Source: Takakia lepidozioides
Lineage: Eukaryota > Plantae > Bryophyta
Reading direction: 5' to 3'
NCBI GenBank assembly: GCA_030704615.1
Contig: CM060734.1
Coordinates: 13,764,001 to 13,828,000, forward strand
Length of the DNA: 64,000 nt
The notes below the pieces were generated by a model. That model saw only the letters and a list, made by a program, of their open reading frames with translations, had not been told where the DNA came from and ran no database searches. Shown here in pieces: positions 1-22,495 of the stretch. Position 1 is the first letter of the stretch; each line of letters starts with the position of its first letter. The position numbers were made by a program, and so were the translations under genes.

Positions 1-610
1 GCATAACGGTCCCCCTTTGTTCTCCCAAAGAACCCTCCACCGATTTGGAACCAGCGGGAATTCCCTTTGGTAGTTGGCAGTCCGGAACAGCTCCCCACTC
101 TTTGGTCGCTTTCCGGCTCGCTCGCTTACTCACTAGTTTTTGGACACCAACGGGCTTGCACCGTTCTCGGGGTTACTACTCCCTATATATACTTCTGTAG
201 CTGTCCGCGGGGGTTTCACAACCAGCCATGCCATTTTATGGCGAACCACCACGAAAACCCTCGACTCCCGGTGATGAGTCGCGGTGAGTCTTGGCCCACT
301 CACCACAGCCACTATGGACCGTGATGAGTCCCAAGACTCCCCACGACTCCCACCACGAGGTCTCCGCCCCCATGGTGAGTCCTATGCCACCCCCACTAAG
401 TCTCGCTAAGCTACCACCACCCCTTGTGGAGCCACCCCCACCGCAACCCGGTGTGCGGGGCTCCACCTAGTGAGTGCCTCCGCCTCCTTGAGTGCCTTGG
501 GCACTCAAGGGTGCTTCAGCCCCCCATACCTATCGCTGCCGCTGCCCCCACCACAGGGGCAGCCCCTCATGTGTCCCGACCCCCTGCCCTCAAGGCAAAG
601 GGCCGCGACA
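1..610. mobile_element. Probable terminal part of an unrelated LTR nested into the RT of the Gypsy copy at 611
   Basis: Ends in ...GGCCGCGACA (CA) at 610. From 611 the sequence becomes collinear with the RT of the sister element (ggtgga-gtttgctcggtgctacatagatgac). TATA-like cctatatata at ~182. The other end and TSD lie outside the window. Confidence 0.45.
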
Positions 611-3066: not shown

Positions 3067-3310
3067 GGGAGTGGATACAACCATGGAAGGCTAACAAGAA
3101 ACGCAAGGCCTAGCTACTAGGAGACCTTGAACACACGAGATTCTGGCTCAAGTTCACAGATTGCAAGACGGCGACTAACGATGGGGCTACTCTTGTACCC
3201 AGCCTCTTGGTCTATAGAGTTTGAGTACAATAGGGACAGTGATAGAGGACTTAGTACGGCTGTGGCTATTACATCTTGTAGCTATCTGGAGGTAGAGGGA
3301 CCTATCCACC

Positions 3311-3321
3311 AGCTAGGGGGG
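3311..3321 (+). promoter_or_regulatory. Polypurine tract
   Basis: AGCTAGGGGGG just before repeat A; same motif at 6473-6484 on the minus strand in copy 2. Confidence 0.75.
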
Positions 3322-3324
3322 CGA

Positions 3325-3855
3325 TTGTGGCAGACTACTTTATTGTGCATATATGTGTGGTGTGGTTTGGTCAGCGATGTAGTTGTGTAACGATATGTAT
3401 GCGCACGACAGCTGTCAAGTTAAATAAGCACAGTGTGAAAACAGCTAGAATAAAACTAGTTATTTGTATTTAACACTTGGATTTAGGTCAAGTGTTAAAT
3501 CAGGTGTCAAGTTTAGTTTGACACCTGGTCCGTCTTATCTTCAGGAGAGCGGCAGTCGCGCAGCTCATCTCTCTCGAGTTGAGCCTGCGCGACCGAGCTC
3601 CTTCATCGCTTCAGATCTGAGTGTGCTTATGATGAGAGTGTAGGTTGTTGTGGGGTGGAGTCCCCATAGCTTGGGGTGCCCCTGGCTCGACTATTATCTT
3701 AAAGAGTGATGCTGTTGGATTCATGTTGTTTTCTTGTGTAAACAGTGCGTTTTCCTAGTTTTCTTATCATTATGGCAGACTACTTTATTGTGCATATATG
3801 TGTGGTGTGGTTTGGACAGCGATGTAGTTGTGTAGCGATATGTATGCGCACGACA
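3325..3855 (+). repeat. Split terminal repeat block A1 (3325-3410) - GC - B (3413-3769) - A2 (3770-3855)
   Basis: 86-bp A repeated directly around a 357-bp B; A|B junction GACAGCTGTC. Confidence 0.92.
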
Positions 3856-4194
3856 ATGGGGATATCATCAAAGTTGGAATTGTACCAAATGTCATTCTGA
3901 ACACTGCCCTGGCAGCTCTGAAAAAGGGGAAAGAGGTCCGTGGCGACATCTTCAAAGCTGGAATTGTACCGAATGTCATTCTGAACCATACCCTGGTGGA
4001 CATGTATGCAAATTGTGGGTGCATCGAGCCCTGGAGTAGGGCAAAGAGGTGCATGGGGATATCATCAAAGCTAGAATTGTACCAAATGTCATTATGAACA
4101 TTGCCCTAGCAGCTCTGGAAAAGGGCAAAGAGGTCCATGGCGACATTGTCAGAGCTGCAATAGTACCAAATGTCATTATGAACAATACCCTCAT
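3856..4194 (+). pseudogene. Tandemly duplicated PLS-class PPR motif fragments
   Basis: GKEVRGDIFKAGIVPNVILNHTLVDMYANCGCIE; four copies of the (H)GDIxKAGIVPNVI segment, with frameshifts. Confidence 0.8.
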
Positions 4195-4252
4195 AGAGAG
4201 AGATGACTCCGGCTTGCAGCCGGCGTAACTAAGTGCCACTTCACCTTGCGGC

Positions 4253-5229
4253 TGTCGAATGGCTTTTACTCACCCATCCCTTCACTATCCGAGGTCGGAA
4301 CTCCAAGATAGAAGAGTTGGATATCTCTATGCACTCAGCCCGCTCAGAACAATCAGTCATGACCTACAGCTAGTGTATCATGGTAGTGCTTCCTGTTTGT
4401 ATTCCTTCTTGCCTTCATGTCAGCAAGTTATCTTACTGTTTATATTTAAGTATCAGATTGCTTCGGCAATCCACCAGGTTCCAATCACTTTTCCATTCAT
4501 TCCACAGCTTCCCTCAGGTCTCTCTACACAATGTGAGTATGGAATATGTATCAGATTAAGTTATATCAAGTAACAGGCTGTAGCCATGGTATCTCTAATC
4601 TGCTCTACAGTTTCACCCTACAGCTTTGCATGTATCAAGCATCTACAGATCATCTCTCCTCCTTCACTGTGCTCTCCATTCTTGCTCCCGTTCGTGCACT
4701 TCGCCTGATCTCCTCTACTGATGACCAAGAAGTGCTCTCTCAGAAGTGTCCCCCATGTTGCTGCTATGCCTAATTTATCTGCAAGCTATTCTAACCGCCT
4801 AACTAACTAACTGTCACCCAAGAAGTAAGCACGTTCCCTATGCAGATGTCGTTCCCACACAGTCATTTTCTGCAAATGATAACCGTTCCCTATGTACGTT
4901 GTGATGGGCTGTGCCAAGCTGCTGTGCCGAGCTGTGACTGGTTGTGTCGGACTGTGTTGGGCTATGACTGGCTGTGTAAAGCTGTGTCGGGCTGTGTCGT
5001 GCTGTGACTGGCTGTGCGAAGCTGTGTCGAGCTGTGATAGACTGTGATAGGCTGTGATTGACTGTGACAGACTGTGTAAGGCTGTGTCGGGCTGTGGAAG
5101 ACTGTGCAACCTTGTGTACCACCCCCTAAGCCTGTGTTGGTCTAAGTCTACCATCGTAGGTCTGCGCAAAAATTAAGGGTACCCCATAGAACCCGAAAAA
5201 CTGTCTAAGTCCCAGATAGCCCTCTAACA
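4253..5229 (-). mobile_element. Solo LTR with 5-bp TSD
   Basis: TG...CA ends; GCGGC at 4248-4252 and 5230-5234; homologous to the LTR at 32342-32962; GGCTGTG-type array at ~4900-5110. Confidence 0.92.
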
Positions 5230-5357: not shown

Positions 5358-5807
5358 TCAAGAGGTCAAAGAGGTATGCGACTCAAGTTGTCTTTTGTTG
5401 GTGATAATAGCAGTGAGGGAACGGAGTGCCGTCCTGTAGATAGCTTTAAAACATTTGTGGATAGGGATAAGTGGGATTTTGAAGTTATTGTGAAGGGCAG
5501 AGATACTGGCATTGTGTATTCCACCCCGTGTGCCAGCTGTAATGACTATTAGGGGGCCGGTAGACCAACCATGACGGCGAATAGCTTGAATGAGTGGGAC
5601 ATATTTTTGGCGTTTTTCAAGTATGGAGGAGGGGGGGTAGCGGTCATTACAGTATGTAAACTCAATGAAGTGTGTAGTGAATTCAGGGGATGGTATGCTA
5701 GGAGGTGAGGTGCCGATAGGCAACCCGAGCACCAGGAGGATGTCGGGGCAGAGTCGGGCAGGGCATGCGCAGGGGAAGCGGGGTCTACACGAGCATGGTA
5801 GTAGCCA
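5358..5807 (-). pseudogene. Restriction-like endonuclease C-terminus of the non-LTR element
   Basis: CPDILLV...FIEFTYC...EKRQKYVPL...GW...VITAGTRGGI, the PD-(D/E) RLE pattern of R2/NeSL/Dualen-type elements. Confidence 0.8.
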
Positions 5808-6470
5808 TGTCGTGCGCATACATATCGCTACACAACTACATCGCTGTCCAAAAACCACACAACACATGTGCACACCACACACTAGTATACCACTAGTCCA
5901 CCACTAGTCCAACCACTAGGCTACAACTAGTCAGTCACTAGGCTGCCACTATGCTGCCCACTATGGCAGTCACTAGTCCACACAATGATAAAGAAGAAGA
6001 ATACAAGCACAAGCTCATGTGAGCTCACAAAGCTGAAGCATAAACTCATGCATATATAACCTCATCACTCAAATACAAGTCAAGCCAAGTGCACCCCACG
6101 CCATGGGGAATCCACACTACGGCGCCATAGCTAGGCGCGGTGAGGCTCAACTCGAGAAAGATGAGCCTTCCGCGCTTGCCGTGAAGATAACCACTCCAGG
6201 GCCTAAATCTGCCTTGACCCCTGGATTGACACTTGGGCCAATCCCAAATGTCAATATGTAAAAGCTAGCTATTTCCTAGCTAATTTCACACTAGTGGTAA
6301 AATAAGTTGACAGCTGTCGTGCGCATACATATCGCTACACAACTACATCGCTGTCCAAAAACTACACAACACATGTGCACACCACACACTAGTATACCAC
6401 TAGTCCAACCACTAGGCTACAACTAGGCTGCCACTATGCTGTCCACTATGGCAGTCACTAGTCCACACAA
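5808..6470 (-). repeat. 3' block A1 (6470-6315) - GC - B2 (6312-5986) - A2 (5985-5808)
   Basis: A1 and A2 are direct repeats (A2 is 22 bp longer through short tandem duplications); B2 (327 bp) is nearly identical to 17511-17837. Confidence 0.93.
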
Positions 6471-6728
6471 TTGGCCCCCTAGCTGGTGCTTAGGTCCCTC
6501 TAAGTCCAGGTAGCCACAAGATGTGATAGTGACCATAGCCTCACTAAGTCCTCCACCACTATCCCTACTACACTCAAACTCGATAGATCAAGAGGCCGGG
6601 TGCAAGAGTTGCCCCATCGTTAGTCGCCGTCTTGCAACTGTGAACTTGAGCTTGGGATCTCATGTATTGACTCCTATGAGCTTGGCCTCCCATGTCTTGT
6701 TAGCTGCCTCCAGTCATGTCCACTGCCA

Positions 6729-9700
6729 CTATCCCAAGCAGCGTGGACACAACCAATCTCCGTCAGGAACCTTCTCAAGAGGTGGTGTCAAGCATCCCAT
6801 ATGCCAACCCCTTGAGCATCGATCACACACCAGCATGGTGGCTGCCCCTTTGGCAGACCCACAGAGCATGCACCTCAAACCTGCAGGTACCATTGCCAAG
6901 TTTGGGTCAACTCTGCCATCGACATTGGGAAGGTGACATGGCGCACAATTACGCACATGGTCCTTCCAAATCATGCCATCCCGACCCTCCAAGATCAGGA
7001 CCCCTGAGGGCAACACCTCTCGAACCCTCAGAATAACACGCCCTGCAGTAACATCCAGAGTCGTAGGAGCAGTCTGCTGCAAATAAACATAGTCACCAGG
7101 GCTAAACCTCCGAACCCCAGGACGATATCCTCCACCACGTATAGTAGCATACCTCAACGTATCACGGTGTTGTGCAATGGCAAGGTTCTCAAAAGCCATG
7201 GGCATGACTTTCTTGAACAACTCTGCACGCTGATCACATACATGTACCCACACGTCCGGATCGTCAAGGTTAAGGACTTGAGCAGTGTCCCTACGAAATG
7301 GTTGCAGGCAAATCCGGCTCTCGGCCAAAGAGAAGGAAATATGGTGAGAAGGAGGCAAGTGATGCTTGTTTGCTGAACCTGTAGCCCATGGCTAACCAAG
7401 GAACCTGAAGATCCCAATCTCCTAGGTGTCCCTTCTGCAAGCCATACTTGCGCAACCCCTCTTCACCGTCTGAACAACTCTCTTTGCTAAGCCATCGGCC
7501 TCAGGATGATCCCGAGAAGTGGTGCGGTGGTCTATCAAGGCTTTATCACACAAAGCCTGAAACTCCCCCAAAAACTCTCTCCTTGGTCCGTGAGTACCTC
7601 AGCTGGAGCACCAAATCGGCTAAGCACACGATCCAAGAATGCATACGCAGCCCCCTCACTAGCCTTGTCAGGCAATGGAACCAACTCAATCCACTTGGAG
7701 AAGTGCTCCACCATCACCAACACATATCTGTGGTGGCGCATAGTCAGTGGCAACGGTCCTGCGAAGTCAAGACTCCACCTGTAGCCCAATCCCATGATTG
7801 GTAAAGGATGCAACTGTGGTGTAGGGGCGTTGAATGAAGCATGCACCCTGTCACACACCATGCACCTAGCCACGAACTGTTGCACCTCTGTATGCATACC
7901 ACGCCACCAATACTGCCCCTGCAATAAACTGTGAGTGCGTCGCACTCCAAAATGCCCCAACTCCTCATGGGCATGCCGCACTAACCGTGCACGCTGTGTG
8001 GGGTGAGGCACAATCCTCACCCGACCATCCTCCCACACTCGAAGTAGGTGTATCCCCTCCCACTTGAACCTCTTGGCTCGTTGCAGGATCCGATCCCTCT
8101 CCCTGGCAGTCACAATGGCTGCCGTGTCTCCCATGCGGAGGTAGTCCAACACAGCCGAATCCTCATGTATATCTCTGGCACCACCTAGCTCATCACTAGC
8201 CTCAGGGTCCTCAGACACTCCGTCTACAGTCATCCCTGTTGTAGGTCCAATCTGACCTCCTGATGCCAAGATACACAAAAATGCAGATGCGTGCCATCCC
8301 GGCACCATCTCCTCGTCCGTCTCACCATGCCACCGAGCTCCAGTGTCATCCTGCTGGCTCATGCATGGATTGCGACTCAATCCATCCGCATCCCGATTGA
8401 CCAAACCGGTCGATGCACAACCTGAAAGTCATACTCCTGGAGTATAAGTGCCCACCGTGCAAGCTTCCCCGTAAGCTTGTCTGACTCCATCAACCACTTG
8501 AGTGGCTGGTGATCCGTGACAAGGGTGAAAAGATTGCCGTATAGATAGCACCTGAAGTGTGCCACGGCCCACACTGCAGCTAAGCACTCTCCCTCATATG
8601 AGCTGTACTTAGCCTCTGCAGCGTTGTTCGAGCGGCTAGCGTAAGCCACTACGAACTCTCTTCCCTCATCATCCACCTGTGTGAGCACCGCTCCAAGCCC
8701 CAACATGCTCCAATCCGTATGCAGCTGAAAGGGACGCCCCCTGATAGGTCGTCTCAAGATAGGCGCAGAGGTCAACCTCGCCTTGAGCTCTTGAAAAGCT
8801 CGTTCCTGCTCATCTTCCCACTGCCACTCCTGGTCCACCTTGGTCAGCTTGGTTAGAGCCTTTGCAATGGTACTAAATCCCTTGACAAACCGTCTATAAT
8901 AGTTTGCCAACCCCATGAAAGCTCAAACTCGGCTCACATCCGTGGGGCGTGGAATTTGTGCAATGGCCTCTACCTTAGTTTGTTGTACTCCCAATCCTCC
9001 AGGATATATCATGTGACCCAGATACTCAATCTGGTTGTGGAAAAACTTGCACTTCCCCGGATGCAACTTCAATCCGTGCGCTCTCAAGCGCTCCAATACC
9101 ACCTGAAGGTGTCTCTCATGCTCCTCCATCGTAACACTAAAGATGATGATGTCATCTATGTAGCACCGAGCAAACGTCCACCCCTGCTAGAATCCTATCC
9201 ATGACTCTCTGAAACTCTGCAGGAGCATTCTTAAGCCCAAATGGTAAGAACCGCCACTGGTATAGGCAATCCTTGCCGTGCTCATTGATCCCCCAGAATG
9301 CCGTCTTCTGCTTGTCCGCCTCCTTGATTGGCAACTGGTGATATCCGGATTGTAAATCGAAAGTGCTAAAGGCCTTAGCATGCCCGATGGCATCAAAGAT
9401 CTCCTCTGGTGTTGGCATGGCATACTTATCGGACTTGGTCTGACGATTTACAGGCCGGTAATCACCGCACATACGTCTCTCCGTCCAATTGCCATAGACA
9501 TCCTTCTTGGTTGGCATCACTGTGGCTGAAGCATACTCTCCACCAGAGAGCTCCACCAAACCTGCCTCCCAGAGATCTTGAGTCCTCATCTGAATCAAAG
9601 ACCTCTCCATGTCACTGTATCTATAGGGTCTCCGAAAGATTGGCGTGTCAGTGGCCAACTCAATACGGATCTCTTGACCCTTCAGTGCTCCCAAGTCCTT

Positions 9701-9760
9701 CAAACTGAAGGCAAAGCAATTCCTGTAAGCCCTCAGGAACCGCCGTATACGTCGTCTCTC
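6729..9760 (-). pseudogene. pol: pol: RT, RNase H, integrase, intact PHD finger (several frameshifts)
   Basis: RRPYRYS, RMCGDYRPVN, DLQSGYHQ, LPFGLKNAPAEFQR, YIDD; RNase H and IN motifs as in copy 1; CMLC-x11-CDRC-x4-HMGC-x14-CPRC. Confidence 0.95.
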
Positions 9761-10169
9761 TCCTCCGGTGACAATGGGTCCAATGTCAGGCTCCCAATTG
9801 TCCTCCGTAACTACAACCTTAAGTATAGTGGGCTTAGAGGTAGAGGACGCGTCCCGTGGTTGCTATGCTGCAACCTCTTGAGCAGTACTCCCTGCCTGCT
9901 CAGTCAATGACAAGACCTCATCCTGCCCCATCATCTCATCATTGAGGACCTCCTCAACCCGAGAAGAATCCCCAACCTCATCTATCACAGCCGCCTTGGC
10001 TGCCAACTCCCTCTGAACCTCGAGCACCTCCCACGTGTGCCATGGATGCATGCACCCCGTGGTCCTTATATGCTCGCCCCCACTCACTGCCTGTACCGTC
10101 TCGGTAGGCAGAGAGACCATTGAGGGAAGTGTACTCCGCACTCTGCGTTGCTCAGCCAGAGCCAAGCTG

Positions 10170-11115
10170 ATAATCCAGGTCAAGCAATTGAGATCCATTG
10201 CTTGCCCCAACACTTGACGACGTGATGCCTCAGAAAGAGACGACACCGCCGTGGTACCAGTGGTAAAACCCATTGCCCGCTCACGCTCGTCAGCATTAGG
10301 CTCCACTAACTGCTGCAACTGAGCATCCCACAGGAGGCCAGGTCCACTATCCCGGAAAGCATGCGATCATGGGAAGCTGAGCAGTGTAGGTAATGTTGCC
10401 CGTGGTTGACCCACCTTGTTGACCACTGCCAAAGGCGAACGGTCATCGTGTCTCACACGCTGAGACTGCCTCCCTGTGTCCAGAATGTTATCCACTGTGA
10501 GATGTGCTGGCCGCTGCACCCCATCAAATGCACGCTTGATCAGTGCGGGTGGCATCAAGTTAGTCCACCATAGCCGTGGACGATGAGCTTGTGACCCCAC
10601 TGTAGCTGCATCTAGCAACACTACTGACCCAAGCCACGACCGGACTTGATGCACACTGGCCATCACCCTGGCCCGAGAATCGCCCATCAGTGGCACATTC
10701 TCCAAGATGTATGCTGGAGATACAGCTTGATGAAGCTGCAAGTGGCGCAAAACCCGCACCATCTCCCAAAACAGACCCGACCTCGAGTCTCGCAATCCAT
10801 TGCCATGCCTGGCTGATGAATGCCTTGGCAGGGCCAACCTGCCACTACCAGATCAATGGAGCCAACCCGCTCCAAATCCTGCGCCCCAGCAACGAAATGT
10901 CTGCTGGCAAGGCCTGCTGATATCCACGAATTGCAGACACCGACAACAACTCAGGGTACCACTGCACCAACTGAGCAACATGGCGAAGTGAAACCCGTCG
11001 TGCAGTCTCATCCCTCTCCACATACAGGTAACGCCAAACTTGTACACCTGCTTGTAACACAGCAGCCAATCCGGTGCTGATCCCGCCAAACAAGTCCAGA
11101 AGACAAATGCCTTCA
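10170..11115 (-). pseudogene. C5 cytosine DNA methyltransferase domain (DNMT3-like) between protease and RT
   Basis: In order: I LDLFGGI, II YVERD, III ADIS, IV AGWPCQG, V RSGLFWE, VI LENVP, VIII DAATVGSQAHRPRLWWTN, IX ERERAMGF, X RRQVLGQAMD. Split over four ORF-track pieces by indels. Confidence 0.92.
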
Positions 11116-11519
11116 TCCGGATACTGCCACACAATAGGTGTGGTGTCCAATGGAGACAATTGAGGTGGTCCTGGTGCAATCCCCACACTCTCCTCCTCTC
11201 CTGACGGTACAAAAGCCTCCACCCAAGCTTGTTGCACCCGTCGATTAGCATCCCGCTGCAAATCCTTGCTCGTGCCCCACAATGGAGTCTGAGCAACCAT
11301 GGTAGGCAACTCCGCCATACCATACATGTCATCCTGCTCTCCCGGAGGTGGTACATCCTCTGAATGAGCATTGCCCTCAAGCAACTCTCTAGGCCAACTC
11401 ACTGCCGTTGTGAATGCTACTAGTGTCGGCATCTTGCCTCGCTGGGCAACTGCAACTCCTCCTATGAACGTCACAGGGAGCTGCACACGCCGGACCTCCC
11501 CTGACTGCCATGTAGACCT

Positions 11520-11920
11520 ATAGGAAGCTGACTCCTCCCAAAAATCCAAGGTGAAGCCCATGGGGTACAACACTGCCCCACCAACCAGGACATCGTATGA
11601 GACTGCGTCTGTCACAATGTCCTTGGCTCGCATCACTGAGCCACCTGTAGGGTGATCCGGCCGTAGTCTGATAGCCAACTCACACCGTGTCATGCCCCGA
11701 GCCTACTCCGATCCTCCCAGAGATGTCTGTATCTGGAAAGGACAAGGCTCCAATCCGCCTCCGTGAGGCCAAGCCTGCAATAGCAGCTCTGCCCAGCATC
11801 AATGGCTGTGCTCCCGAGTCCAACAAGACCCGCAGTGGCCGGTACCTCTTGCCTGCCGGTCCACTCAAATAGAAAATGCCATCCTGGTTGTCTAACATGA
11901 CAACTCCAGGTGTCACGCGC
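11520..11920 (-). pseudogene. Retropepsin-like aspartic protease
   Basis: RVLLDSGAQ catalytic motif and downstream YDVLVG; one frameshift. Confidence 0.85.
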
Positions 11921-12559
11921 TCAATGGCTGGCCTAGCTGGCAGCTCCATCAACCTGGCAGCTGCAGATTGCCATGCCGCCGCCGTGGCAGTCTTAACCCT
12001 CAAATCCGAGGACCCCTCCGGCACTACACCTCCTACTATCTCCGCAGAAGATGAAGTAGTAACTCCCCACTCTCACAGAGTGTAGCTGCAGCCTGAACAC
12101 CTCAGCTGGTCTTACCCCCGGCGTCGTAATCATGGGTAGCGAGAGAACAATGGAGCTGGCACACACAATGTGGCCGCTCCTAGCAGCACACTAGCTGCCG
12201 TAGCCTTGGAAACACTAGGTAGTGGTGCTACCCGTTGTAGCTCTCCCCAATGGCATAGTAACCTCCGCCTCGAAATCAGTCGGGCGAGAACTAGGTGCCA
12301 TGGATGGCGTCGACACTGTCTCCGCCAATGTGAATGACTGAGGAAAGCCTAGCCTGACGGTTTGCCTCCCCACGCTGTGGATCCAACTACACCTCTGCAC
12401 CTCGTGGCTCAGGAAACGCGTGCTGCTCCTCGAGTCACGGGCATTGCAGCAGACTCCACCTGCACTAGTGGTAGTGCTGCTCCACAGCATGAATCCCATG
12501 CCTCCCATATCTCCTCCCTCAGGAGCAGGAGGTGGACCATCCGGCCTTAGAGCCAGTAC

Positions 12560-13155
12560 CACCTGAGCTGTAGCCATGGCAGCGAGCCTCTGCTCTAGCT
12601 GCTGAAGCCGGTTGGCCATGCCTTGGTCAACACCTGACCTCCGCGTCCTTGGCCACGTTGAGCTTGCCCTTGGCCTCGTGGCTGGCCACCTCGTCCTCTC
12701 TGGGCTGCTCCACCTCGCCCCGGCCATACCATTGTTCCCTTGGAACTGGCCTGGGCGCAACTCAGAATGCAAACCATAACACTGGGCCTCTCCATGTCTG
12801 TGCTTGCCACAATGCCCACACTGCAACTGTGCAGGCTGTGCATGTGCCGACCTTTGCCTCCCTCTGGGCAATCCTTCTTGACATGGGGTCCTCCACATGT
12901 CCAGCACACACATCCGCCCGTTGTTGGCCAGAAATGAAGGGGAGAGACCCCTGCATCTGAGGTCCTCTCTGCCTTCCCTGAGCTTCACATGAGCCCCCTT
13001 GTTGCCTTGAGCACGTGAGGTAGTGGGTTGGCTAGGAGCACCACTACCCCGTGGTGTCTCCTTAGCAAATCCCACCATGACCACTCGTTCCTCCAACATG
13101 TTGAGCTCTATCCACTCTGCCAGCAAAAACACATTTGCTAAGGTGGGTTGGGCCG
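12560..13155 (-). pseudogene. gag: gag C-terminal part with two zinc knuckles
   Basis: CWTCGGPHVKKDC and CGHCGKHRHGEAQC followed by an RGG-rich tract; frameshifted. Confidence 0.8.
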
Positions 13156-13159
13156 CTTG

Positions 13160-13580
13160 TGGCGAGCTGTGATAGGCTGTGGCCTGTGCCCTGTGGGGCT
13201 GTGACGGGATGTGTCAGGCTGGTGGCAAGAGGGGGAGGGGCTGTGAGGGCTTGTGAAGGCCGTGCCTGAGGCCTTTGAGGCGTGACGGGCGTGTGAGGGG
13301 CTATGACAGGCTGTGCCCAGGCCTTTGGGGCTGTGATGGGGCTGTGAGGGGCTGTGACAGGCCGTGCCTGAGGCCTTTGAGGCTGTGTGACGGGAGTGGG
13401 AGGGCTTTGTTTGTGACAGGCAGGTGCATGAGGCCTTGGGGGATTGTGCACGGGAATATTGTTCGTGAGGGGCTGGTGACAGGCCGTGCCTGAGGCCTTG
13501 GGGCTTGCTGTGTGACGGGCTGTGAGGGGCTGTGACAGGCAGTGCTGAGGCCTTTGGGGTTTGTGACGGCTATGACCAGT
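13160..13580 (+). repeat. GGCTGTGA-based tandem array (inverted part of the 5' UTR array)
   Basis: Repeated gctgtga/ggccgtgcctgaggccttt units; reverse complement of 15230-15985. Confidence 0.85.
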
Positions 13581-14539
13581 GAGCGTGTGGGGACATTTTG
13601 TGATGGTCTGCACCTGGTGGCCTACACGGCCCGTGTTGACCTGTGGATGGCATGTGCTGACTCGTGGAGGCACGGTGGACATGCCTAAGGACTGGATGTG
13701 GTATGGAAGGCCGAATTTTGAAGATCGTGGAGGGCGGTTTGAGGAGTTATTTTTAAGATATTCCCATGGTCATGCAAGTGAGGGAAAAGAGGAGAAGAGA
13801 GAGTGTTGGGGTGAGGGCCTGTGGGTTAGGCATTGCTTTAGCTTTTCTTCTCGTAGTTTCACACCTCTAATTAGGCCAAGACCTTTCCGTAGGTGGAGGC
13901 AAGGGTCAGTCCGGGTGTGGGCGGTGGGGTGTCCTTGCCAGGAGCAACACCGTGGAGTTGTTTTGGTGTCTTGGTGTGGGGGGAGTTCTTTGTCGCTCTG
14001 ATTTCTTGTGTTTGGATCCCATCCCCTACCATACCTGCATGCTTGATGATGCGCCATGCTAGTTTTGTGTGGGCGTTGTTTTATAGGTGATTGGTCCGGA
14101 TTTGATCACCGGCCAGTCCTTAGAGCATGCTGTCGATGGTGAGGCTGGGGTGATGACCAGCCAGACCATCATTGTTTTTCTCCTGTGGTGAGGTTGGAGG
14201 TGATGGACCAGCCAACCATAGGAGTGCTTGCGGTGGATGCAGGTACAGGTGTAGGCTATGTTAGGAAATTAGTATTCCAAACCATAAGCCGCAACAGGTT
14301 ATCTACCCGGTACCTTGTGGAGGAGGGGGTTTAGGGACATGTTCATGACCGGTTGAGTGTCAACACGGAGGTGCCACTAGTTGCTGGGGATAGTGCCGGT
14401 TTGAGCACTAGCGATACTAGTGGGTACACGAGACGAGGTGTGCGGTTTTAGGCCACCTCACCTCCTGTGTCTTCTACGGAAGGTTCTGATTCGGACTGTG
14501 AATCAGGAGGACTCATAAATGCAAGTTGTTTCTTTGCCC

Positions 14540-15225
14540 GTTGTGGGACACAATGGAGGAGATGTATGGAGCTACCAAGGGGCCACGAAGGTACTCTGGA
14601 GCGGTGGGCACCATCGAGTTGGATGATTTTATCCAAGATTTGATCGTTGGTGTGATTGCAGCAGCAAATGCGCAATCCACAACTATTTAGCCTTTCATGG
14701 CTGGAAAGGTTGGTGTTGTTTCAGCACCTTGAGGGGCCGCCTATGGATGATTACACATGAGTTCAGGCGGGGGCATGAGGTTGAGGTTGAGAGAGAGTGG
14801 AGGATTGTACTGGTCACCAGGACTATGTCTCCATCACTAGGGGCACTAGAGCCACAGAGGGGCAGTGGCTACACCTGCCGCTGCACCGGCAGCTTCGCAA
14901 GCAGCAGTGGACTGGTGGTACAGTAGCTACGACATCCACCCAAGCCACTACCGCACCAACACTAGCACCGTGCCTGCCTTCAACCCTGTTGTGGAGTTCT
15001 TCTTGAGAGTAGAGTTGAGAGGGAACTACCAAGGGGTTGCGGAAAGAGAAGTTGCGGAGCTTGCAAAGAGTTCCAACGGAAGCCGACCGAGAGCTGAGGG
15101 AGGCTTTCACTCGATGAGGCGCTTGATAAATGTAACCCAAGGGGTTACGGACGCTCAGGCAGCCAATTCTGGTATGGGATATTGGACAAGGAGCTGAGGA
15201 GAAGGGTGCGGGATTGCAACTTCCG
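14540..15225 (+). pseudogene. gag: gag N-terminal/capsid part, inverted relative to its element
   Basis: Stitched across indels: ELDDFIQ..DRWCD..., LFQHLEG, NPVVEFF, MRRLINVTQGVTDAQA, ELRRRVRD. This plausibly continues into QPTLANVFLLAE at ~13150 on the minus strand. Confidence 0.65.
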
Positions 15226-15229
15226 TCAC

Positions 15230-15985
15230 AGGCCCTCATAGACCCCGTCACAGCTTTTGCCACAGCCTGTCACAGCCCAAAGGCCTCAGGCACGGCCTTG
15301 TCACAGCCCCTCACAGCCCGTCACAGCCTCAAAGGCCTCAGGCACGGCCTGTCACAGCCCCCCTCACAGCCCATCACAGCCCAAAGGCCATGGGCACGGC
15401 TGTCATAGCACCCACAGCCCGTCACAGCCTCAAAGGCCTCAGGCACGGCCTGTCATAGCACCCACACCCCTCCTCACAGCCGAAACAGCCCGTCACGCCC
15501 CAAAGGGCACAGGGCACAGCTTGTCACATCTCGCCACAGCTGTTACAGCCCCTCATAGCCCGTCACAGCTTGCCACAGCCTGTCACAGCCCATCACAGCC
15601 CCAGAGGCCACAGGGCACAGCCTGTCACAGCCCCTCACAGCCCTCACAGCTCGCCACAGCCTGACACAGCCCCACAGGCCACAGGGCACAGCCTGTCACA
15701 GCCCAGCACAGCCCGTCACAGCCCCAGAGGCCACAGGGCACAACCTGTCACAGCCCCTCACAGCCCCTCACAGCTCGCCACAGCCTGACACAGCCCCACA
15801 GGCCACAGGGCACAGCCTGTCACAGCCCCGCACAGCCCGTCACAGCCCCACAGGCCACTTGGCACAGCTGTCACAGCCCCTCACAGCCCGTCACAGCTCG
15901 CCACAGCCTGACACAGCCCGTCACAGCCCCACAGGGCACAGGGCACAGCCTGTCACAGCCTGTCACAGCCCGTCACAGCCCCACC
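15230..15985 (-). repeat. (TCACAGCC)n array in the Gypsy 5' UTR
   Basis: Dozens of cacagcc units with higher-order repetition. Confidence 0.9.
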
Positions 15986-17498
15986 CATGGCCGCTCTGGC
16001 AGTTTAGCCATTTCTCCAAGGGGTTTAGCCACGCCAAGCTAGGGTTTGTGTCTCTTGGACTCTAGGCTTCTTTCCACCGAGCTATGGTGGCTGTGAGGAA
16101 ATCAGCAAGGTATCCTTGCTCTTTCGGCTCCCACACACCCCTAGTAGCCCTAAGCCATGAGGTGGTTGCCACAAACCAAGCCTTCTTTCTCACTTAGCCT
16201 CCCCAAACACGCCACTAAACTCAATGGCAAACAACCAAGCCCTGCTGGTTCCCAGCCCTTGTGAGCACTTATTCAAGCACTCTCATTGGCCATAGCATCT
16301 GTCTTAGAGCCTATTCCAGCCCTCTACACCTGTTGCTTCAAGAGTTGCGCTCCCTTCAAGCTTGAAGTTGAAACCCCAACTCACATATGCCCTACAAGTG
16401 CTTTTCTTTCACTCCAAGTGGAAACCAGCCCTAGACCTTCCGTTCTAGCTCTCTAAGGCTTGAAAACAAGAGCCTCAATGGGCTGAAGGCATGCTCCACA
16501 CATGCCCCACTCTCACCATAAGAGAATCAGCTCCTTTGCTTCATTCTTGCACCCACAAACCTGAAAATACAAGCTTCAGCAGGCTGAAAGCATGCTCTAC
16601 ATGCCCTACAGGGAAACCAGCCCCTTCCTTCCTTTCTTGCACTCCCACACCTAAAAGTGCAAGCCTTCACCAGGCTGATAGCATGCTCACACATACATTG
16701 CCCTCACATAAGGGAAGTCAGCCCTTCCCTCTTCCTTGCTTGCCCTCCAAGCTTGAAGATGGAAGCTTCAATGAGCTGAATACATGCTCCACACATGCAA
16801 CCTCTTCACACAAGAGATATCAGCCCCTATCTTGGCTCCTTGGCTCCTTGATGCTCTCTAAGACAAGACTAAGCACTCCACAGCCTTTGCCAAGCTCTTG
16901 AAACCCTAAGGCTTACATTTCCAGCCACAAGACACTTCTCTGTGGTGCCAGAGCTCTTCTTCCAAGCTCTGAAACCCAGGTGCACATTCCATGGCCTTGC
17001 CGCACCTCTTAGCTCCTGTTTCTAGCCCTGCTCTTGCCATGACAAGAGCCCTCTCAATGCTGAAGCTCGAGATTGAAACCCAATCTCACTACTCCACAAA
17101 GTGCATTGATTTGCCCCAAGCCAAATCAGCCCTTTCGCTTGGTCTTGCAATCCTTCACACAATGAAAGCTCGCATTCCCAGGTCCAGTTCTCAGCTTTGC
17201 ACCCCAAAGCCACTATAACCTGCTCTTGACTGGTCCTCTTCCCAATCGTGCTTGCTCATGCATGTACACAATCTGAGACCATCAAGGTGCTCTGGAATTA
17301 CCTGCAACATGGTGCTTTCATCTCTGAAGCTGAAGAGCGAATGCCAAGGTCTACCACCTCGTAACCCACATCGCCTCCGCTTCTAACAACCAAGAGCTCC
17401 ATGGTGCTCCTTGCATAACAACTTGGTTTCTCTCATTCTCAAGCAAAAACCACAAGTGCTACAACTAACTCGTATCTAGCACTCATAGATACGAGCTG

Positions 17499-17510
17499 AT
17501 CTTTCTCGAG
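17499..17510 (-). promoter_or_regulatory. Self-priming PBS
   Basis: CTCGAGAAAGAT directly follows B1 and is the exact complement of ATCTTTCTCGAG inside B1 (17676-17687); no TGG tRNA PBS. Confidence 0.85.
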
Positions 17511-17837
17511 TGATAAAGAAGAAGAATACAAGCACAAGCTCATGCGAGCTCACAAAGCTGAAGCATAAACTCATGCATATATAACCTCATCACTCAAATA
17601 CAAGTCAAGCCAAGTGCACCCCACGCCATGGGGAATCCACACTATGGCGCCATAGCTAGGCGCGGTGAGGCTCAACTCGAGAAAGATGAGCCTTCCGCGC
17701 TTGCCGTGAAGATAACCACTCCAGGGCCTAAATCTGCCTTGACCCCTGGATTGACACTTGGGCCAATCCCAAATGTCAATATGTAAAAGCTAGCTATTTC
17801 CTAGCTAGTTTCACACTAGTGGTAAAATAACTTGACA
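17511..17837 (-). repeat. 5' terminal repeat B1 (327 bp)
   Basis: Near-identical to 5986-6312; starts TGTCA, ends TTATCA. Confidence 0.95.
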
Positions 17838-20140
17838 GCCATGTGGCCACCGTGTGGTCGGGAGGTCTACCCTAGTAGGTGCCTGCATTGATGAGGGAGA
17901 ACCAACGTGTTTCAGGTCTATTTAGGAGGAGTTTGTGGATGTGCCAGATGGCATGGTTATGTTGGGTGACTCTGAGGCCATGAATGATAGGGTGTGTGCA
18001 GAGGCTAAGCAAATGTAGCCATGTATCCCGGGTCGGGTGTGTGTTCGCACATAGCGGGCAATTTGGGGAGGGATAGAAACGTGGCCAGAAGGTATGTTTA
18101 CGTTGGTGGCCCATGTATTGGGCATATCTGAATTTGAGAGTCTGCCTGATTTGGGCATCTGTGGCGATATTGGTGCGCCAGAAATGGTTAGAAAATTTAT
18201 GATGAAGAACCTCCGAGTGTGTCCATTTCTGGACATGTAGCTTGGTGAGGCTGGCGGAGGTCGAGGCTTGTTTATGGGCTTCGCGGGTAAGGGTGGTTGA
18301 GAGATTGCGGATAAGGCGAGGCAAATTGGGACCTGGAACTGGGTGGATGAACCAGAAGGGGTGGGTATGGGCAACGTGTATGGGTTCTGACGTAGGGTTC
18401 ACCTCGGGACAGGTAGCCCCTTTCTGGGCAAAGAAGTCGGCCATGTCGTTACCGGTGATGCCGGTGTGGGAGCGGACTTTAATGAAGTATATGGGTTGGT
18501 CTAAGGAGATGGCAATATGGGCAATGGCAGATATAAGGTTCCTGTCGGAGTGGTAATGGTAAGAGGAAGGGCGGGAGAGGTGGTTATGGATGAGAAAGAG
18601 TGAGGTGAGGCTGTCGGTAAAGATGTAGTGTGGGGGGAAAATGAGGAGAGTTGGGTAATGGCATCATGAATGGCCATGAGCTCGGCTCGGAGGATGGTGG
18701 CCGGGCCTGGAAGACGTAGGGCGATTCCTTGGTTGGTAGCGGCATGGTATATGCCGTAACCAGCCCGGGGACCAGCAATGAGGGAGCCATCCGTGTAGTG
18801 GGAGTGGGCAGGTGGGTATTTGAGAGGAAGTTTCGTGCGAGAAACTAGCGGATCCGTGGGGATAGTTGGGATAGGGGGGATGGGTGGGCGGGAAAGCATT
18901 TGACACCACGACTTAGTTGCTTTAATGTGAGGAATGGGACGCATGGGGCGAGGGGTGCCGGGGAGAGTAGGGGGGGTCGGGAAAAAAGTGGCCTTCAGGC
19001 CATGCGTCTATGTGAGAAGGTGGAGAAGGGCGATCTGGGAAGGTATTGGGTATGATGGTAGAGAAGGTGGGGCGGTGGACCAGCAGAATGAGGGTTAAGG
19101 TAGGTTCTTTGTGTTGTAGATATTTGGGGAGGGGCTGGGTGCGCGAATATTGGAGTTGCCCTGGGTCAATAGCGGCTAGGGGCGTGACTCCGGGCGGCAG
19201 TTGGTGGAGGGGGTGTGGACCATTGGGCATTTGTTGGTGAGAGAGGAGGAGGATGGTGGCATTGGAGGGGGATGACTATGCCGCGAGCCGTGCCCATTGA
19301 AGTGCGTCTTGTAGATGGGGCCCTTGGGGGGGGTGTGCAAGGCCATGGCTAGTCCAGGTATCCTGGGATGCAGAGCCGATGGCTCCAAAGAAATAGTCTC
19401 TAGGGTGAGGGCTAGAGTATGACGAAAGCGTCATAGGGCATGTAAGCGGGCTAGAATAGTAGGAGTGTGTAATGTGAAAGGATTCTATAAGGAGTATTAG
19501 GATGTCCGGAGGAAGAGTAGTATGTGACTGGGCTAGAGATAGCTTGATAAGGGAGCGGGGTTTTTTGAGGGGGGTATCGGCTAGATACCGTTCAGCTAGC
19601 CAGCAGACTTCTGTTGCAAAGTCCTGCCGTGTTGGCGAGAATTGACTAGGTGAGGGGGAAGAGGTAGAAAATCTATGCCAGAGCCAAGAGAGGCGGTCGT
19701 TTGGAATAAGGCCTATGTAGCGGCCGTTGGAGGCGTATAATTTGGACATGCGGGATCCTGTGCAAATGATGGGGGTGGTGTAGGAGATGTCTTTATTGGG
19801 GTTGCATTCAGCAATGCAAACATGCATTATGAGCAAGAAGGGGGGTATGGACGTATCGGGCGTCTATTGGTTGGGGTGGGGAGGTGTGTTGCTGATGGAT
19901 ATGGGTTAGGTAGTTGGTATTGGTGGATTTATGAAAAGCAATGAGGAGGTCAAGGTTATGGTCTGGGTTGCAATCATCGTGAGATCCGAATAGGTCATCC
20001 TCCGATTGCCAGATGTTGTCTTCCGATGGGTATCCGGCCCACTTGCAGAGATAGAAGCTATCCAGACATAGGGCGCCGAATTCGTCAGTTGTGGTTTGGG
20101 TTCTGATTCCGAGGATGTCTTTGATGGTGAAGGCTTCCGG
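17838..20140 (-). pseudogene. Non-LTR ORF: chromodomain, PCIF1-like segment, RNase H, CCHC finger
   Basis: FTIKDILGIR...YLCKWAGYPSEDNIWQSEDDL; YSSPL...YSS...RDYFFGA; YTDGS...RAELMAI...FTDS...KVRSHTGITGNDMAD; CPLC...HLLSLC...QHN. Stops and frameshifts present. Confidence 0.82.
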
Positions 20141-20269
20141 GTTGTCTGGGTTCGTATATTGAAGAATGAGTGGGGGGGTTGAGCAAGTAGGGGATATCCA
20201 AGTAGGGGGGGGGGGGGGGGGGGGGCGGGGAGGGTTAGGTTTGGGGAGGTTTGCTCAAGCAATAGATAA

Positions 20270-22495
20270 GACTATCCTTAAAGAACCTCTCAAATAACTC
20301 TCAAGAGCCCTCAAATTATTGCCATGAACTTCTGAAATTTGTCCTCAATCAGCCCCTAACATAGACCCACCGAGGTTCAAGAAGTTCGCAAACTTGGACT
20401 CTAAACAGTCCACCAAAAGGCCTAAGGCGCCCGCCAATTAGTGGCCTCCACGCTCTCTAACCAGCCCCCACAATGGCTCTACAAGCCTGCCCAATGTGGC
20501 CTCCAAGAGTCCTCCAAACAGCCCTTAAGAAGCTCCTCAAATCTGCCAAGTATTGGCCTTCAAGGACCTCCGACAGCCCTTAAGAAGCTCCTCAAATCTG
20601 CCAAGTATTTGCCCCCAAGGACCTCCAATAGTCCCCCAAAGTGCTCTTAGAAAACTCCAAAAATATCCATAGTCAGTCGATTTTTCATCCGTCACTGACC
20701 AAATTTCATCCAAAACCACGATTTCTCATCCGCAGGTCCGATACTTCATCCGCCGCGATAGTTCATCCGTCGGTGTGATATTTCATCCACTGGCGCGATT
20801 TCATCCGCTGGCGCAGTTTCATCCGTCGCCGCAATTTTTCATCCGATGGCACGATAGTTCATCCGCTGCCACGATTTCATCCGCTGACGCAGTCTCATCC
20901 GTCGCCGCGATTTTTCATCCGATAGCGCGATAGTTCATCCACTGCCACGATTTCATCCGCTGATGCAGTTTCATCCGTCGCCGCAATTTTTCATCCGATA
21001 GTGCGATAGTTCATCCACTGACGAGATTTCATCCGTCGCCGTGATTTTTCATCCAATAGTGCGATAGTTCATCCTCCGGCACAGTTTCATCCATTGCAAC
21101 CAATTCTCATCCAGGAGTGCCAATTTTCATCCACTGGCTCAATAGTTCATCCGATTGGACAATGGTGGTCTCCCAACTCTGGGGCAATGTTCCCACGCGT
21201 TCCTATGCGTTCCCATGAGTTCCCAAGCGTTCTCACGCGTTCCCTTGAGTTCCCAAAGAGTTCACACATGTTCCCAAGCGTTCCCACGCGTTCCTAAGCT
21301 AGGGCTTGCGCCGCTTTGCCTCTACGATTGCTGCAACGAGCTATGGCTTCTATGGAGCAACCAGAGGTGCTGTTCTTGGTTTCTTGAGCATCAATAGGCC
21401 ACCAAGAGTGCCTCTAATTCCCTGAGCAAGCTATTTGCCACACAACAAGCTCTCTTTCTCTATGGAACTTATTGAAACAAGCACAGAACAAGCTATTGAG
21501 CTTTCTATGGCATACCCTCTTCTAGCCATCGCATGCACTCATAATGTTTCTTTCTATGGCCATAGTGCACCTCTTAGAGCTCATAATCCAGCCCTGCACT
21601 TGCCACTTCCATAGACATGCTCTTCCCAAGCTTGGGATTGAAACCCCAACTCAAAGCATGCTCTACAAATACACTATTCTGCCCCAAAGAGAAATCAAAT
21701 GTCTACCTCCACTCATAGCTCTCATAAGCTTGAAGTTGAAGACTCCCACAAGCTGAAACCATGCTCCACACATGCACCGCTTGCTTCCTTAACACCCGAG
21801 CTCTTCTTGAACTCTTCAAACCCTCCACTTATAGCTCTCATAAGCTTGAAGTTGAAGACTCCCACAAGCTGAAACCATGCTCCACACATGCACCGCTTGC
21901 TTCTTTAACACCCGAACTCTTCTTGAACTCCTCAAACCCTGCAACACTTGCAGAACAAGAGCTTCTTCACAAGCTCTCAAACTTTTCAATGGGGCTCTCC
22001 TTGAATACATAAACACCACAAGGCTTTCTTCTTGCAAACCCTGCAATACCTTGTAACTTAAGAGCTATCTACCAAACTCTCTTCCACACACAAGTGCTAA
22101 CTATGCTAACACCTTGCACTCATAGATGTAAGCAGGTCTTCTTCTAATGATACGGAAATGGTGAAAAGAGGAGAAACCACTCTATCATGTTATATAAGTC
22201 AAGCCAATGACACCTTTGCTAAAGGACTCCACCATACAGACCTCACCCACTCTCCATCTCAAGTATTAGAGCTATGGCGGCGAGAGAGGCCTCGGGAGGC
22301 TCGACTAGAAGAAGACGAGCCTGCCTACGTCTCACGTGGAGATAACCTCCCCACGTCCCAAGTGAGGTTCGCCACCTCACTTGGCACATGGAACCAAATG
22401 AAGTCCCAATGCCAACAAAATACAAATATAAATGTATAATGTCCTAATTAGTTAGAAATAATTATTTCTAACTAATCACAAATAAAACCATGACA
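20270..22495 (-). mobile_element. 5' end (B repeat, PBS, 5' UTR) of a third, divergent member of the split-repeat Gypsy family
   Basis: B at 22148-22495 starts TGTCA and ends TATCA; self-complementary PBS at 22136-22147; UTR 21300-22135 resembles 16030-17500; abuts an unrelated integrase. Confidence 0.78.
20680..21295. repeat. TTCATCC array (~19-20 nt period) followed by a GTTCCC array
   Basis: More than 20 ttcatcc cores at 20680-21152; gttccc units at 21189-21295. Confidence 0.9.

Follow-up and report, generated by a model that had tools for sequence, protein, structure and literature searches.

Known systems with split repeats or cleaved junctions

Split direct repeats are known from PAT, Ngaro and TOC1-type elements of the DIRS order, whose arrangement A1-genes-B1-A2-B2 corresponds to a tandem repeat opened upstream of the genes. 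These elements carry a tyrosine recombinase and lack a target-site duplication (TSD). For one Gypsy element, KnitGypsy-Dnmt3 of Klebsormidium nitens, the legend of Fig. 4c in de Mendoza et al. 2018 (PMC5890265) describes repeats arranged as in DIRS and domains as in Gypsy. The DNA analyzed here is a stretch of 64,000 nucleotides from Takakia lepidozioides (Bryophyta; assembly GCA_030704615.1, contig CM060734.1, positions 13,764,001 to 13,828,000 of the forward strand), referred to as the window, which harbors three copies (copies 1 to 3) of a Ty3/gypsy retrotransposon family. Their direct repeats are split in the same way as those of PAT, Ngaro and TOC1, whereas the family possesses a DDE integrase, TG...CA ends, 4-bp TSDs and the Ty3/gypsy order of reverse transcriptase (RT), RNase H and integrase. 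The DDE enzyme and the TSDs thus place the family outside the DIRS order despite its split-repeat topology.

The resemblance to KnitGypsy-Dnmt3 includes the encoded proteins. The pol products are 43-46% identical (P0063, P0056), a C5 cytosine DNA methyltransferase (DNMT) is located upstream of the RT and a PHD finger follows the integrase. The Klebsormidium locus L003 also has the same layout as the window element, B-genes-A-GC-B-A, where A and B denote the two parts of the repeat. The window family is a member of the streptophyte/chlorophyte 'Gypsy-DNMT3/PHD' lineage of Ty3/gypsy elements, as it combines a Gypsy pol and a C5-DNMT (weak in the window copy) with a DIRS-like repeat layout. The KnitGypsy-Dnmt3 paper (PMC5890265), which concerns a different host, presents no element ends, TSDs, palindrome, mechanism or logic of primer-binding site (PBS) and polypurine tract (PPT). 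The original prediction had described a Gypsy element with split long terminal repeats (LTRs) and noted split direct repeats as typical of tyrosine-recombinase elements. The DIRS-like layout of a Gypsy element as such is already in print (PMC5890265); searches for 'split LTR', 'permuted LTR' or the KnitGypsy-Dnmt3 element returned nothing further in the searchable literature. Also not found there were the ends, the TSDs, a CAGCTG attachment (att) palindrome, a mechanism, self-priming, a de novo joint of U5 and U3, the strict asymmetry and the spread to liverworts and a chlorophyte.

Three further systems share single traits with the family. Cleavage of two-LTR junctions by foamy virus and HIV-1 integrases (PMC1180852, PMC1905944, PMC4372172) likewise involves a DDE enzyme and an internal palindrome of abutted ends. 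In retroviruses, however, this palindrome forms where the RT-made termini meet, and its cleavage represents a side or salvage route. In the window family it lies inside each LTR, is inherited through U3 and apparently provides the sole route, while the junction of the RT-made termini does not appear to be the site that is cut. Tf1 and the sushi group resemble the family in a PBS that directly follows U5 and matches, with covariation of both segments, the complement of the R region of the element itself and not that of a tRNA; but Tf1 has ordinary LTRs, and the corresponding segment in the middle of B of the window family is only a putative 5' end of the mRNA. In the circle junctions of the insertion sequences IS3 and IS30, right and left ends abut with a spacer of 2-3 bp and form an active integration site for a DDE enzyme. 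These are DNA elements with a flank-derived spacer, whereas the window family has a fixed GC spacer within the LTR and replicates through RNA. With moderate confidence, we interpret the family as self-primed Ty3/gypsy elements whose integrase ends are located at a CAGCTG palindrome inside U3, which would be opened after the cDNA termini have been joined.

Layout and target-site duplications

Copy 2 displays the complete layout (Table 1). The original prediction described it as an element bounded by a TSD, with the order B-PBS-genes-PPT-A-B-A and an internal palindrome, and sequence reading together with BLAST of the parts upheld all essentials of this description. Its termini are TGTC...GACA, and the flanking GCCA pair has a chance probability of 1/256. 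The two B copies are 98.8% identical, the two A copies 86.6%, the difference in A being mostly one 22-bp indel within a region of short repeats. About 11 kb of internal sequence separate the PBS from the PPT. Alternative models with A or B-A as the LTR were rejected, as either the flanks or the internal order are incompatible with them.

Relatives were identified by a protein search with the copy 1 pol as query, and their genomic loci were then fetched. The closest pol relatives are liverwort genes with 70-77% identity; the liverwort matches as a whole (Calypogeia fissa, Riccia sorocarpa and Marchantia polymorpha) have about 65-77% identity, and further relatives come from Klebsormidium, Closterium, Haematococcus and others. 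Loci from Closterium (L085) and Tetrabaena (L086) were too rich in tandem repeats to be read. The block PPT-A-GC-B-A followed by flanking DNA was found in Calypogeia (three loci), Marchantia, Riccia, Klebsormidium and the chlorophyte Haematococcus and, with window copies 1 and 2 included, at nine of nine 3' ends from genome assemblies. Metagenome contigs were scanned with the family alignment, which yielded 80 loci for scripted repeat analysis. The A-B-A block is present in 33 of these, corresponding to 30 distinct loci (three pairs represent the same locus), and 14 are full-length B...A-GC-B-A elements.

Across the relatives the integrated ends are always TG(T/C)C...G(A/G)CA. The inner junction is CA-GC-TG in all of them or a product of its decay by C>T/G>A changes, as expected for methylated CHG sites. 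Perfect 4-bp TSDs flank 12 of the 22 full-length elements, against a chance expectation of about 0.09, and five further pairs deviate by one transition. The perfect cases comprise GCCA in window copy 2, GTCA in Calypogeia (L001) and TCTT in Klebsormidium (L003), as well as AAGG, ATGT, ATAA, CCAA and CCAT in five other B...A-GC-B-A elements; four belong to a shorter form described below. Thus two parts of the original prediction are supported: the layout is no one-off rearrangement but a trait of the family, and the ends are located at a mid-LTR palindrome with 4-bp TSDs.

These data also bear on the possibility that the architecture is not real but due to misassembly, to nesting or rearrangement of a copy, or to A being a small element in its own right that landed beside B-type LTRs. 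Only the unusual appearance speaks for it, and collapse of repeats in short reads is relevant to the shorter form alone. The structure recurs in dozens of metagenome contigs and, apart from the window, in five independent genome assemblies. The placement of A is constant, exactly between the PPT and the palindrome and again at the 3' terminus; the unit as a whole is flanked by TSDs, and A does not occur alone except for one isolated reverse-strand match in L061. We consider an artefact or a composite practically negligible. In particular, one of the cases that would have overturned the original prediction, A as an independent miniature inverted-repeat transposable element beside B, is contradicted by the fixed placement of A and by the TSDs around the whole unit.

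Direct repeats of 440-600 bp with about 78% identity were observed just outside the element ends in two loci (L053, 4670-5265 versus 13115-13729; L081, 1973-2415 versus 11676-12114).

Type of integrase

The pol of the family has the order RT, RNase H, integrase, the latter with an H2C2 zinc domain and a DDE (rve) core, as is typical for Ty3/gypsy elements. Residues D511, D571 and E606 (numbering of the copy 1 open reading frame, ORF) are invariant or nearly so in 24 relatives, form a D,D35E motif and align with the catalytic residues of Ty3 integrase (7q5b). Among solved structures, the closest relatives of the window integrase are those of Ty3 (7q5b) and prototype foamy virus (PFV). A search of all long ORFs of the window copy, of L001 (Calypogeia) and of L003 (Klebsormidium) gave no tyrosine recombinase domain (PF00589) at E <= 1. 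A tyrosine recombinase as the integrating enzyme was therefore rejected, as these three full copies have no such domain and rve is present. TG...CA ends combined with 4-bp duplications are a signature of DDE integration and not of tyrosine recombination. The assignment to the DDE integrases made in the original prediction is supported by the conserved triad and its alignment with Ty3.

Copy 2 and copy 1 share 90-97% amino acid identity over RT, RNase H and integrase and 76-88% over the C-terminal PHD part. The frames of copy 2 are broken in several places, which indicates that this copy is defective. The DNMT domain is stronger in the Calypogeia copy (L001, 8801-9856) than in the window copy. 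Its position upstream of the RT in Calypogeia shows that the DNMT-carrying Gypsy lineage described from Klebsormidium is also present in liverworts.

The PHD finger fused behind the integrase is conserved throughout the family and is also present in copy 1 (2922-3041, plus strand). Chromoviruses carry a chromodomain at the position after the integrase. The PHD finger at this position suggests a chromatin-guided choice of targets.

Boundaries set by reverse transcription

In every relative, A starts directly after the G-run of the PPT and B stops directly before the PBS. These edges identify A-GC-B as the LTR defined by reverse transcription (U3-R-U5). The arrangement of PBS next to U5 and PPT next to U3 is that of Ty3/gypsy elements, as are the TG...CA termini with a short TSD in the range of 4-6 bp. 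The integrated element, however, does not have two complete terminal LTRs, as its 5' end consists of B only and its 3' end of A-GC-B-A.

The PBS is not tRNA-like. Instead, young copies from five divergent groups have 10-17 nt directly behind B that pair without mismatch with a stretch around position 150-180 of B, and both segments co-vary between these groups. In a control with shuffled B sequences the mean best match was 6-7 nt and never exceeded 12 nt. This pairing suggests self-priming of the Tf1/sushi type. It also points to a transcription start in mid-B, and the palindrome would then lie about 150 bp upstream of the start, inside U3.

The joint between 3' B and terminal A (B/A joint) corresponds in most copies exactly to the U5 end followed by the U3 start. 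Within each element, identity of the A pair rises and falls with that of the B pair, the A/B values being 100/99% in Calypogeia (L001) and about 83/83% at the low end; as with LTRs, both pairs were therefore identical when the element inserted. Several copies of the large moss-like group have joints that deviate from the canonical one, by +G, +C, -2 at an AT microhomology or, in one case, a small deletion. Since the canonical joint is found in their nearest relatives, the variants were not inherited. In L065 (12296-13229, the same as L066) the terminal A comprises 314 nt, and its start lies within the pol ORF, 140 nt before the PPT. This looks like a single aberrant plus-strand priming event fixed in an insertion, and such a shift is expected if the 5' edge of the terminal A is the 5' end of plus-strand DNA. 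In L061 (12299-12908) PPT-A-GC-B is followed by unrelated DNA exactly from the U5 end of the 3' B onwards; neither a terminal A behind this B nor a 5' B was found within the locus, which may represent a cDNA end captured elsewhere. By these sequence features the B/A joint is made anew in each cycle, the terminal A being attached by joining of full-length cDNA termini and not copied from RNA that contains the joint. The original prediction had regarded B/A as the junction of two LTR ends, and the joint indeed behaves as a freshly made one. Its description as CA-T-TG is correct for copy 2 but coincidental, as the RT-defined ends of relatives are not TG/CA (e.g. TTT/ATTGG, TTTC/AGTTG, CTT/AGTAAA and CAAT/ATACATG).

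The same features weigh on a templated regeneration of the ends as in DIRS and PAT elements, in which an RNA starting in mid-B at the 5' end would reach into the terminal A, the internal A-GC-B would template the missing termini and the joint would be inherited through RNA. Such a route would fit the repeat layout, identical to that of PAT, Ngaro and TOC1, and the strictly constant orientation. However, nearest relatives do not share joint variants, the A copies are homogenised every cycle, the edge of the terminal A coincides with that of the PPT and is shifted in L065/66, no way of copying the terminal A is evident, and TSDs and DDE ends are present. We therefore regard templated regeneration as improbable.

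Still less probable is movement at the DNA level, with the integrase acting like an IS3/IS30-type transposase on a genomic copy, either by copy-out or by excision via the abutted ends, and RT being irrelevant to the ends. The abutted ends with their 2-bp spacer do resemble circle junctions of insertion sequences. But the spacer is always GC and not derived from the flank, PPT and PBS boundaries set the repeat edges exactly, and the repeat pairs were identical at insertion and decayed jointly, which requires a homogenising copying step.

Proposed integration mechanism

According to the interpretation favored here, cDNA synthesis would be primed at the PBS paired with mid-B and at the G-rich PPT, yielding an ordinary linear cDNA, [A-GC-B]-genes-[A-GC-B], whose termini would not be integrase substrates. 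Head-to-tail joining of the U5 end and the U3 start would then create the B/A joint and a tandem pair of LTRs, either in a two-LTR circle or in an open or linear equivalent generated by a late end-to-end jump of the plus strand. The DDE integrase would open the palindrome of the upstream LTR on both strands (CA/GC/TG), leaving two recessed CA-3'OH ends with 5'-GC overhangs. Recessed CA-3'OH ends are the standard processed substrate of retroviral integrases. Insertion with a 4-bp stagger would give B-PBS-genes-PPT-A-GC-B-A. A precedent for the chemistry of the proposed cut is provided by the integrases of PFV (PMC1180852) and HIV-1 (PMC1905944), which cleave the palindromic LTR-LTR junction of two-LTR circles.

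Schemes based on reverse transcription alone, which involved read-through RNA, an additional PPT where A ends, or early cleavage of the plus-strand strong-stop duplex, were worked through on paper. Their product was ordinary two-LTR DNA or B-genes-A, and the observed form would require joining of the two termini. A contribution of the U5 sequence upstream of the terminal A to the right end was rejected as well, as B ends contain no conserved motif and conserved subterminal repeats are located within A. An even balance of belief and doubt attaches to the wider proposition that an ancient Ty3/gypsy lineage, ranging from chlorophytes to liverworts, depends on obligatory joining of cDNA ends and on a DDE integrase acting as a site-specific endonuclease on CAGCTG in U3, always in the upstream LTR.

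Every 5' end consists of flank followed directly by B-PBS. This applies to the 14 full-length elements with diverged repeats, seven B-genes-A elements, window copies 2 and 3 and a second Marchantia copy. The mirror form B-A-GC-B-genes-A was seen at none of at least 22 5' ends, which indicates that it is always the upstream LTR that is opened and that this choice is deterministic. A closed symmetric two-LTR circle, which predicts B-int-A-B-A and B-A-B-int-A in equal numbers, was rejected because the second form was never seen. Thus, of the two-LTR circle cut at a mid-LTR att site that was originally proposed, the end-joined two-LTR topology fits the data but the symmetric circle does not. No sequence feature explaining the choice of the upstream LTR was found. 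A linear precursor, context-dependent recognition of the ends or protection of the downstream palindrome are possibilities. The mirror form would lack a 3' R and would therefore not replicate, which accounts for lineages keeping the observed form but not for the lack of dead mirror copies.

The asymmetry is directly accounted for if the substrate is made linear by RT. After completion of the 3' LTR, the plus strand would jump onto the finished 3' end of the minus strand, copy A and stop or be cut at the palindrome, producing a linear B...A-GC-B-A precursor with integrase ends at both termini. As the minus strand is completed much earlier, an acceptor exists for the plus strand alone, in line with splitting of the upstream LTR only and with the lack of a B-A-B-genes-A form; the +1 and -2 joint variants are typical of template switching. 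Against this stand the inefficiency of jumps onto a blunt duplex end, the lack of a sequence mark for a stop at the palindrome, the need for an endonucleolytic cut or a second stop at the left end, and the larger deletion at the joint in L034/35, which is more like cellular end joining. Such a linear route to the precursor is in our view unlikely but deserves to be taken seriously.

In about 20 metagenome loci a shorter form was found, in which PPT-A borders directly on the flank. Seven of these loci show their 5' end and are B-genes-A elements, four of them with perfect TSDs (TACA, GTAT, CACA and ACTA). This form was seen only in short-read metagenome contigs and at none of the nine 3' ends from genome assemblies. 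It may result from short-read collapse of the A-B-A loop, from later deletion between the A copies, or from real insertions that pair ends of the two palindromes. Of the two additional forms that the original prediction foresaw, B-int-A was thus seen, in short-read contigs only, and B-A-B-int-A was not.

Several points weigh against joining of the termini followed by opening of the U3 palindrome. A symmetric circle should open at either palindrome, so that the missing mirror form demands an asymmetry beyond what can be read from the sequence. The B-genes-A elements with perfect TSDs, if they are primary insertions, imply that the integrase can also pair ends from different palindromes. The palindrome is short (10 bp) and the conserved terminal inverted repeat comprises only about 4-5 nt. 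Finally, circle, linear intermediate, transcript end and enzyme activity are all inferred from integrated DNA copies.

In two contigs, L040 and L037, the first and last 123-127 bases are identical within each contig, an outcome expected of an assembler presented with a B...A-GC-B cycle. L040 reads PPT-A (47 nt)-GC-TGTCAGG.

In all groups the terminal motif of A recurs as two or three direct sub-repeats within the last 30-45 nt of this unit; the sub-repeats are ACGTCACGACA-like in one group and GCGATGTATG-like in liverworts (examples in Table 1). They are possibly multiple integrase binding sites.

Significance

If the proposed cycle is true, the family is an exception to the textbook rule that LTR retroelements integrate a blunt linear RT product by the edges of its LTRs. 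It would then be a natural, DDE-based counterpart both of the split repeats of tyrosine-recombinase elements and of the 'circle junction' model of how retroviruses integrate, which was abandoned long ago. It would also offer a tractable system for productive use of internal palindromic junctions by an integrase and for the question of why split direct repeats arose on two occasions, once alongside tyrosine recombinases and once alongside DDE integrases. The transformability of Marchantia and the 99-100% identical repeats of the Calypogeia copy favor tractability. The family occurs in the sampled assemblies of bryophytes, charophytes and green algae as well as in many metagenome contigs and is therefore relevant for annotation, as finders based on LTR pairs probably miss such elements or set their ends incorrectly. 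The chromatin modules it carries (DNMT and PHD finger) are of current interest.

Neighboring copies and other features of the window

Copy 1 is cut by the start of the window, and copy 3 is a strongly diverged 5' part (Table 1). Both agree with the original prediction, which had described an A-B-A block in a diverged copy 1 and a copy 3 beginning at B. The palindrome of copy 1 is the same as that of copy 2, though its B is only about 70% identical. Copy 3 is colinear with copy 2 down to about position 19164, has its own co-varying pair of PBS and mid-B complement, and the DNA upstream of its 5' end is unrelated.

Table 1. Coordinates of family copies, their parts and repeat arrays (window positions unless a locus is named)
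Feature	Position	Strand	Remarks
Copy 1, cut by window start	1-3855	plus	pol ORF 495-3041
Copy 1, PPT	~3311-3323	plus	3' block
Copy 1, internal A	3324-3410	plus	3' block
Copy 1, GC	3411-3412	plus	3' block
Copy 1, B	3413-3768	plus	3' block
Copy 1, terminal A	3769-3855	plus	3' block
Copy 2, whole element	5808-17837	minus	B-PBS-genes-PPT-A-GC-B-A, from sequence reading and BLAST of parts
TSD GCCA, left copy	5804-5807		matches 17838-17841
TSD GCCA, right copy	17838-17841
Terminal A (distal U3 part)	5986->5808	minus	outer end ...CACGACA, right integrase end
3' copy of B (proximal U3 + R + U5)	6312->5987	minus	starts TGTCAAG, ends ...TTTATC
Palindrome GACA-GC-TGTC (GACAGCTGTC)	6309-6318		right end of element + 2-bp spacer + left end; proposed att site
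GC dinucleotide	6314-6313		between internal A and 3' B
Internal A, 157 bp	6471->6315	minus	directly after PPT; CACGACA end
PPT (G-rich)	about 6490->6472	minus	sense ...AGCTAGGGGGCCA
PBS, 13 nt	17511->17499	minus	sense ACTCGAGAAAGAT; complementary to 17675-17687 and 6150-6162 within B
5' copy of B, 326 bp	17837->17512	minus	outer end TGTCAAG, left integrase end; no A upstream
Copy 2, pol	6732-9703	minus	several broken frames
Copy 2, C-terminal PHD finger	6732-7358	minus
Copy 2, Integrase_H2C2 + rve	7538-8404	minus
Copy 2, RNase H (RT_RNaseH)	8380-8916	minus
Copy 2, RVT_1	9155-9703	minus
Copy 2, weak C5 cytosine DNMT domain	10370-10837	minus	upstream of RT; PF00145, E = 9e-5
Copy 3, strongly diverged 5' part	19164-22495	minus	B begins TGTCATGG at about 22495
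Sub-repeats at right end of A	5808-5850		window example
Sub-repeats at right end of A	2400-2455		example in L023
Tandem array	4921-5126
Tandem array	15276-15994
Tandem array	20717-21150
Tandem array	21706-21937

Tandem repeats with a 10-bp GCTGTG-type unit are located both outside and inside copy 2, in opposite orientations, and 76-bp repeats are also present. The leader of copy 3 contains a 116-bp duplication. Minus-strand ORFs at 18504-19836, adjoining copy 2, show an RNase_H match (PF00075) at threshold and a PCIF1_WW match below threshold; they belong either to the diverged copy 3 or to another retroelement that received copy 2. Directly 3' of copy 1, at 3856-4200 on the plus strand, degenerate repeated motifs resembling pentatricopeptide repeats (PPR) were found, for instance VDMYANCG. 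PPR-like motifs of the PLS class are typical of land-plant PPR genes.

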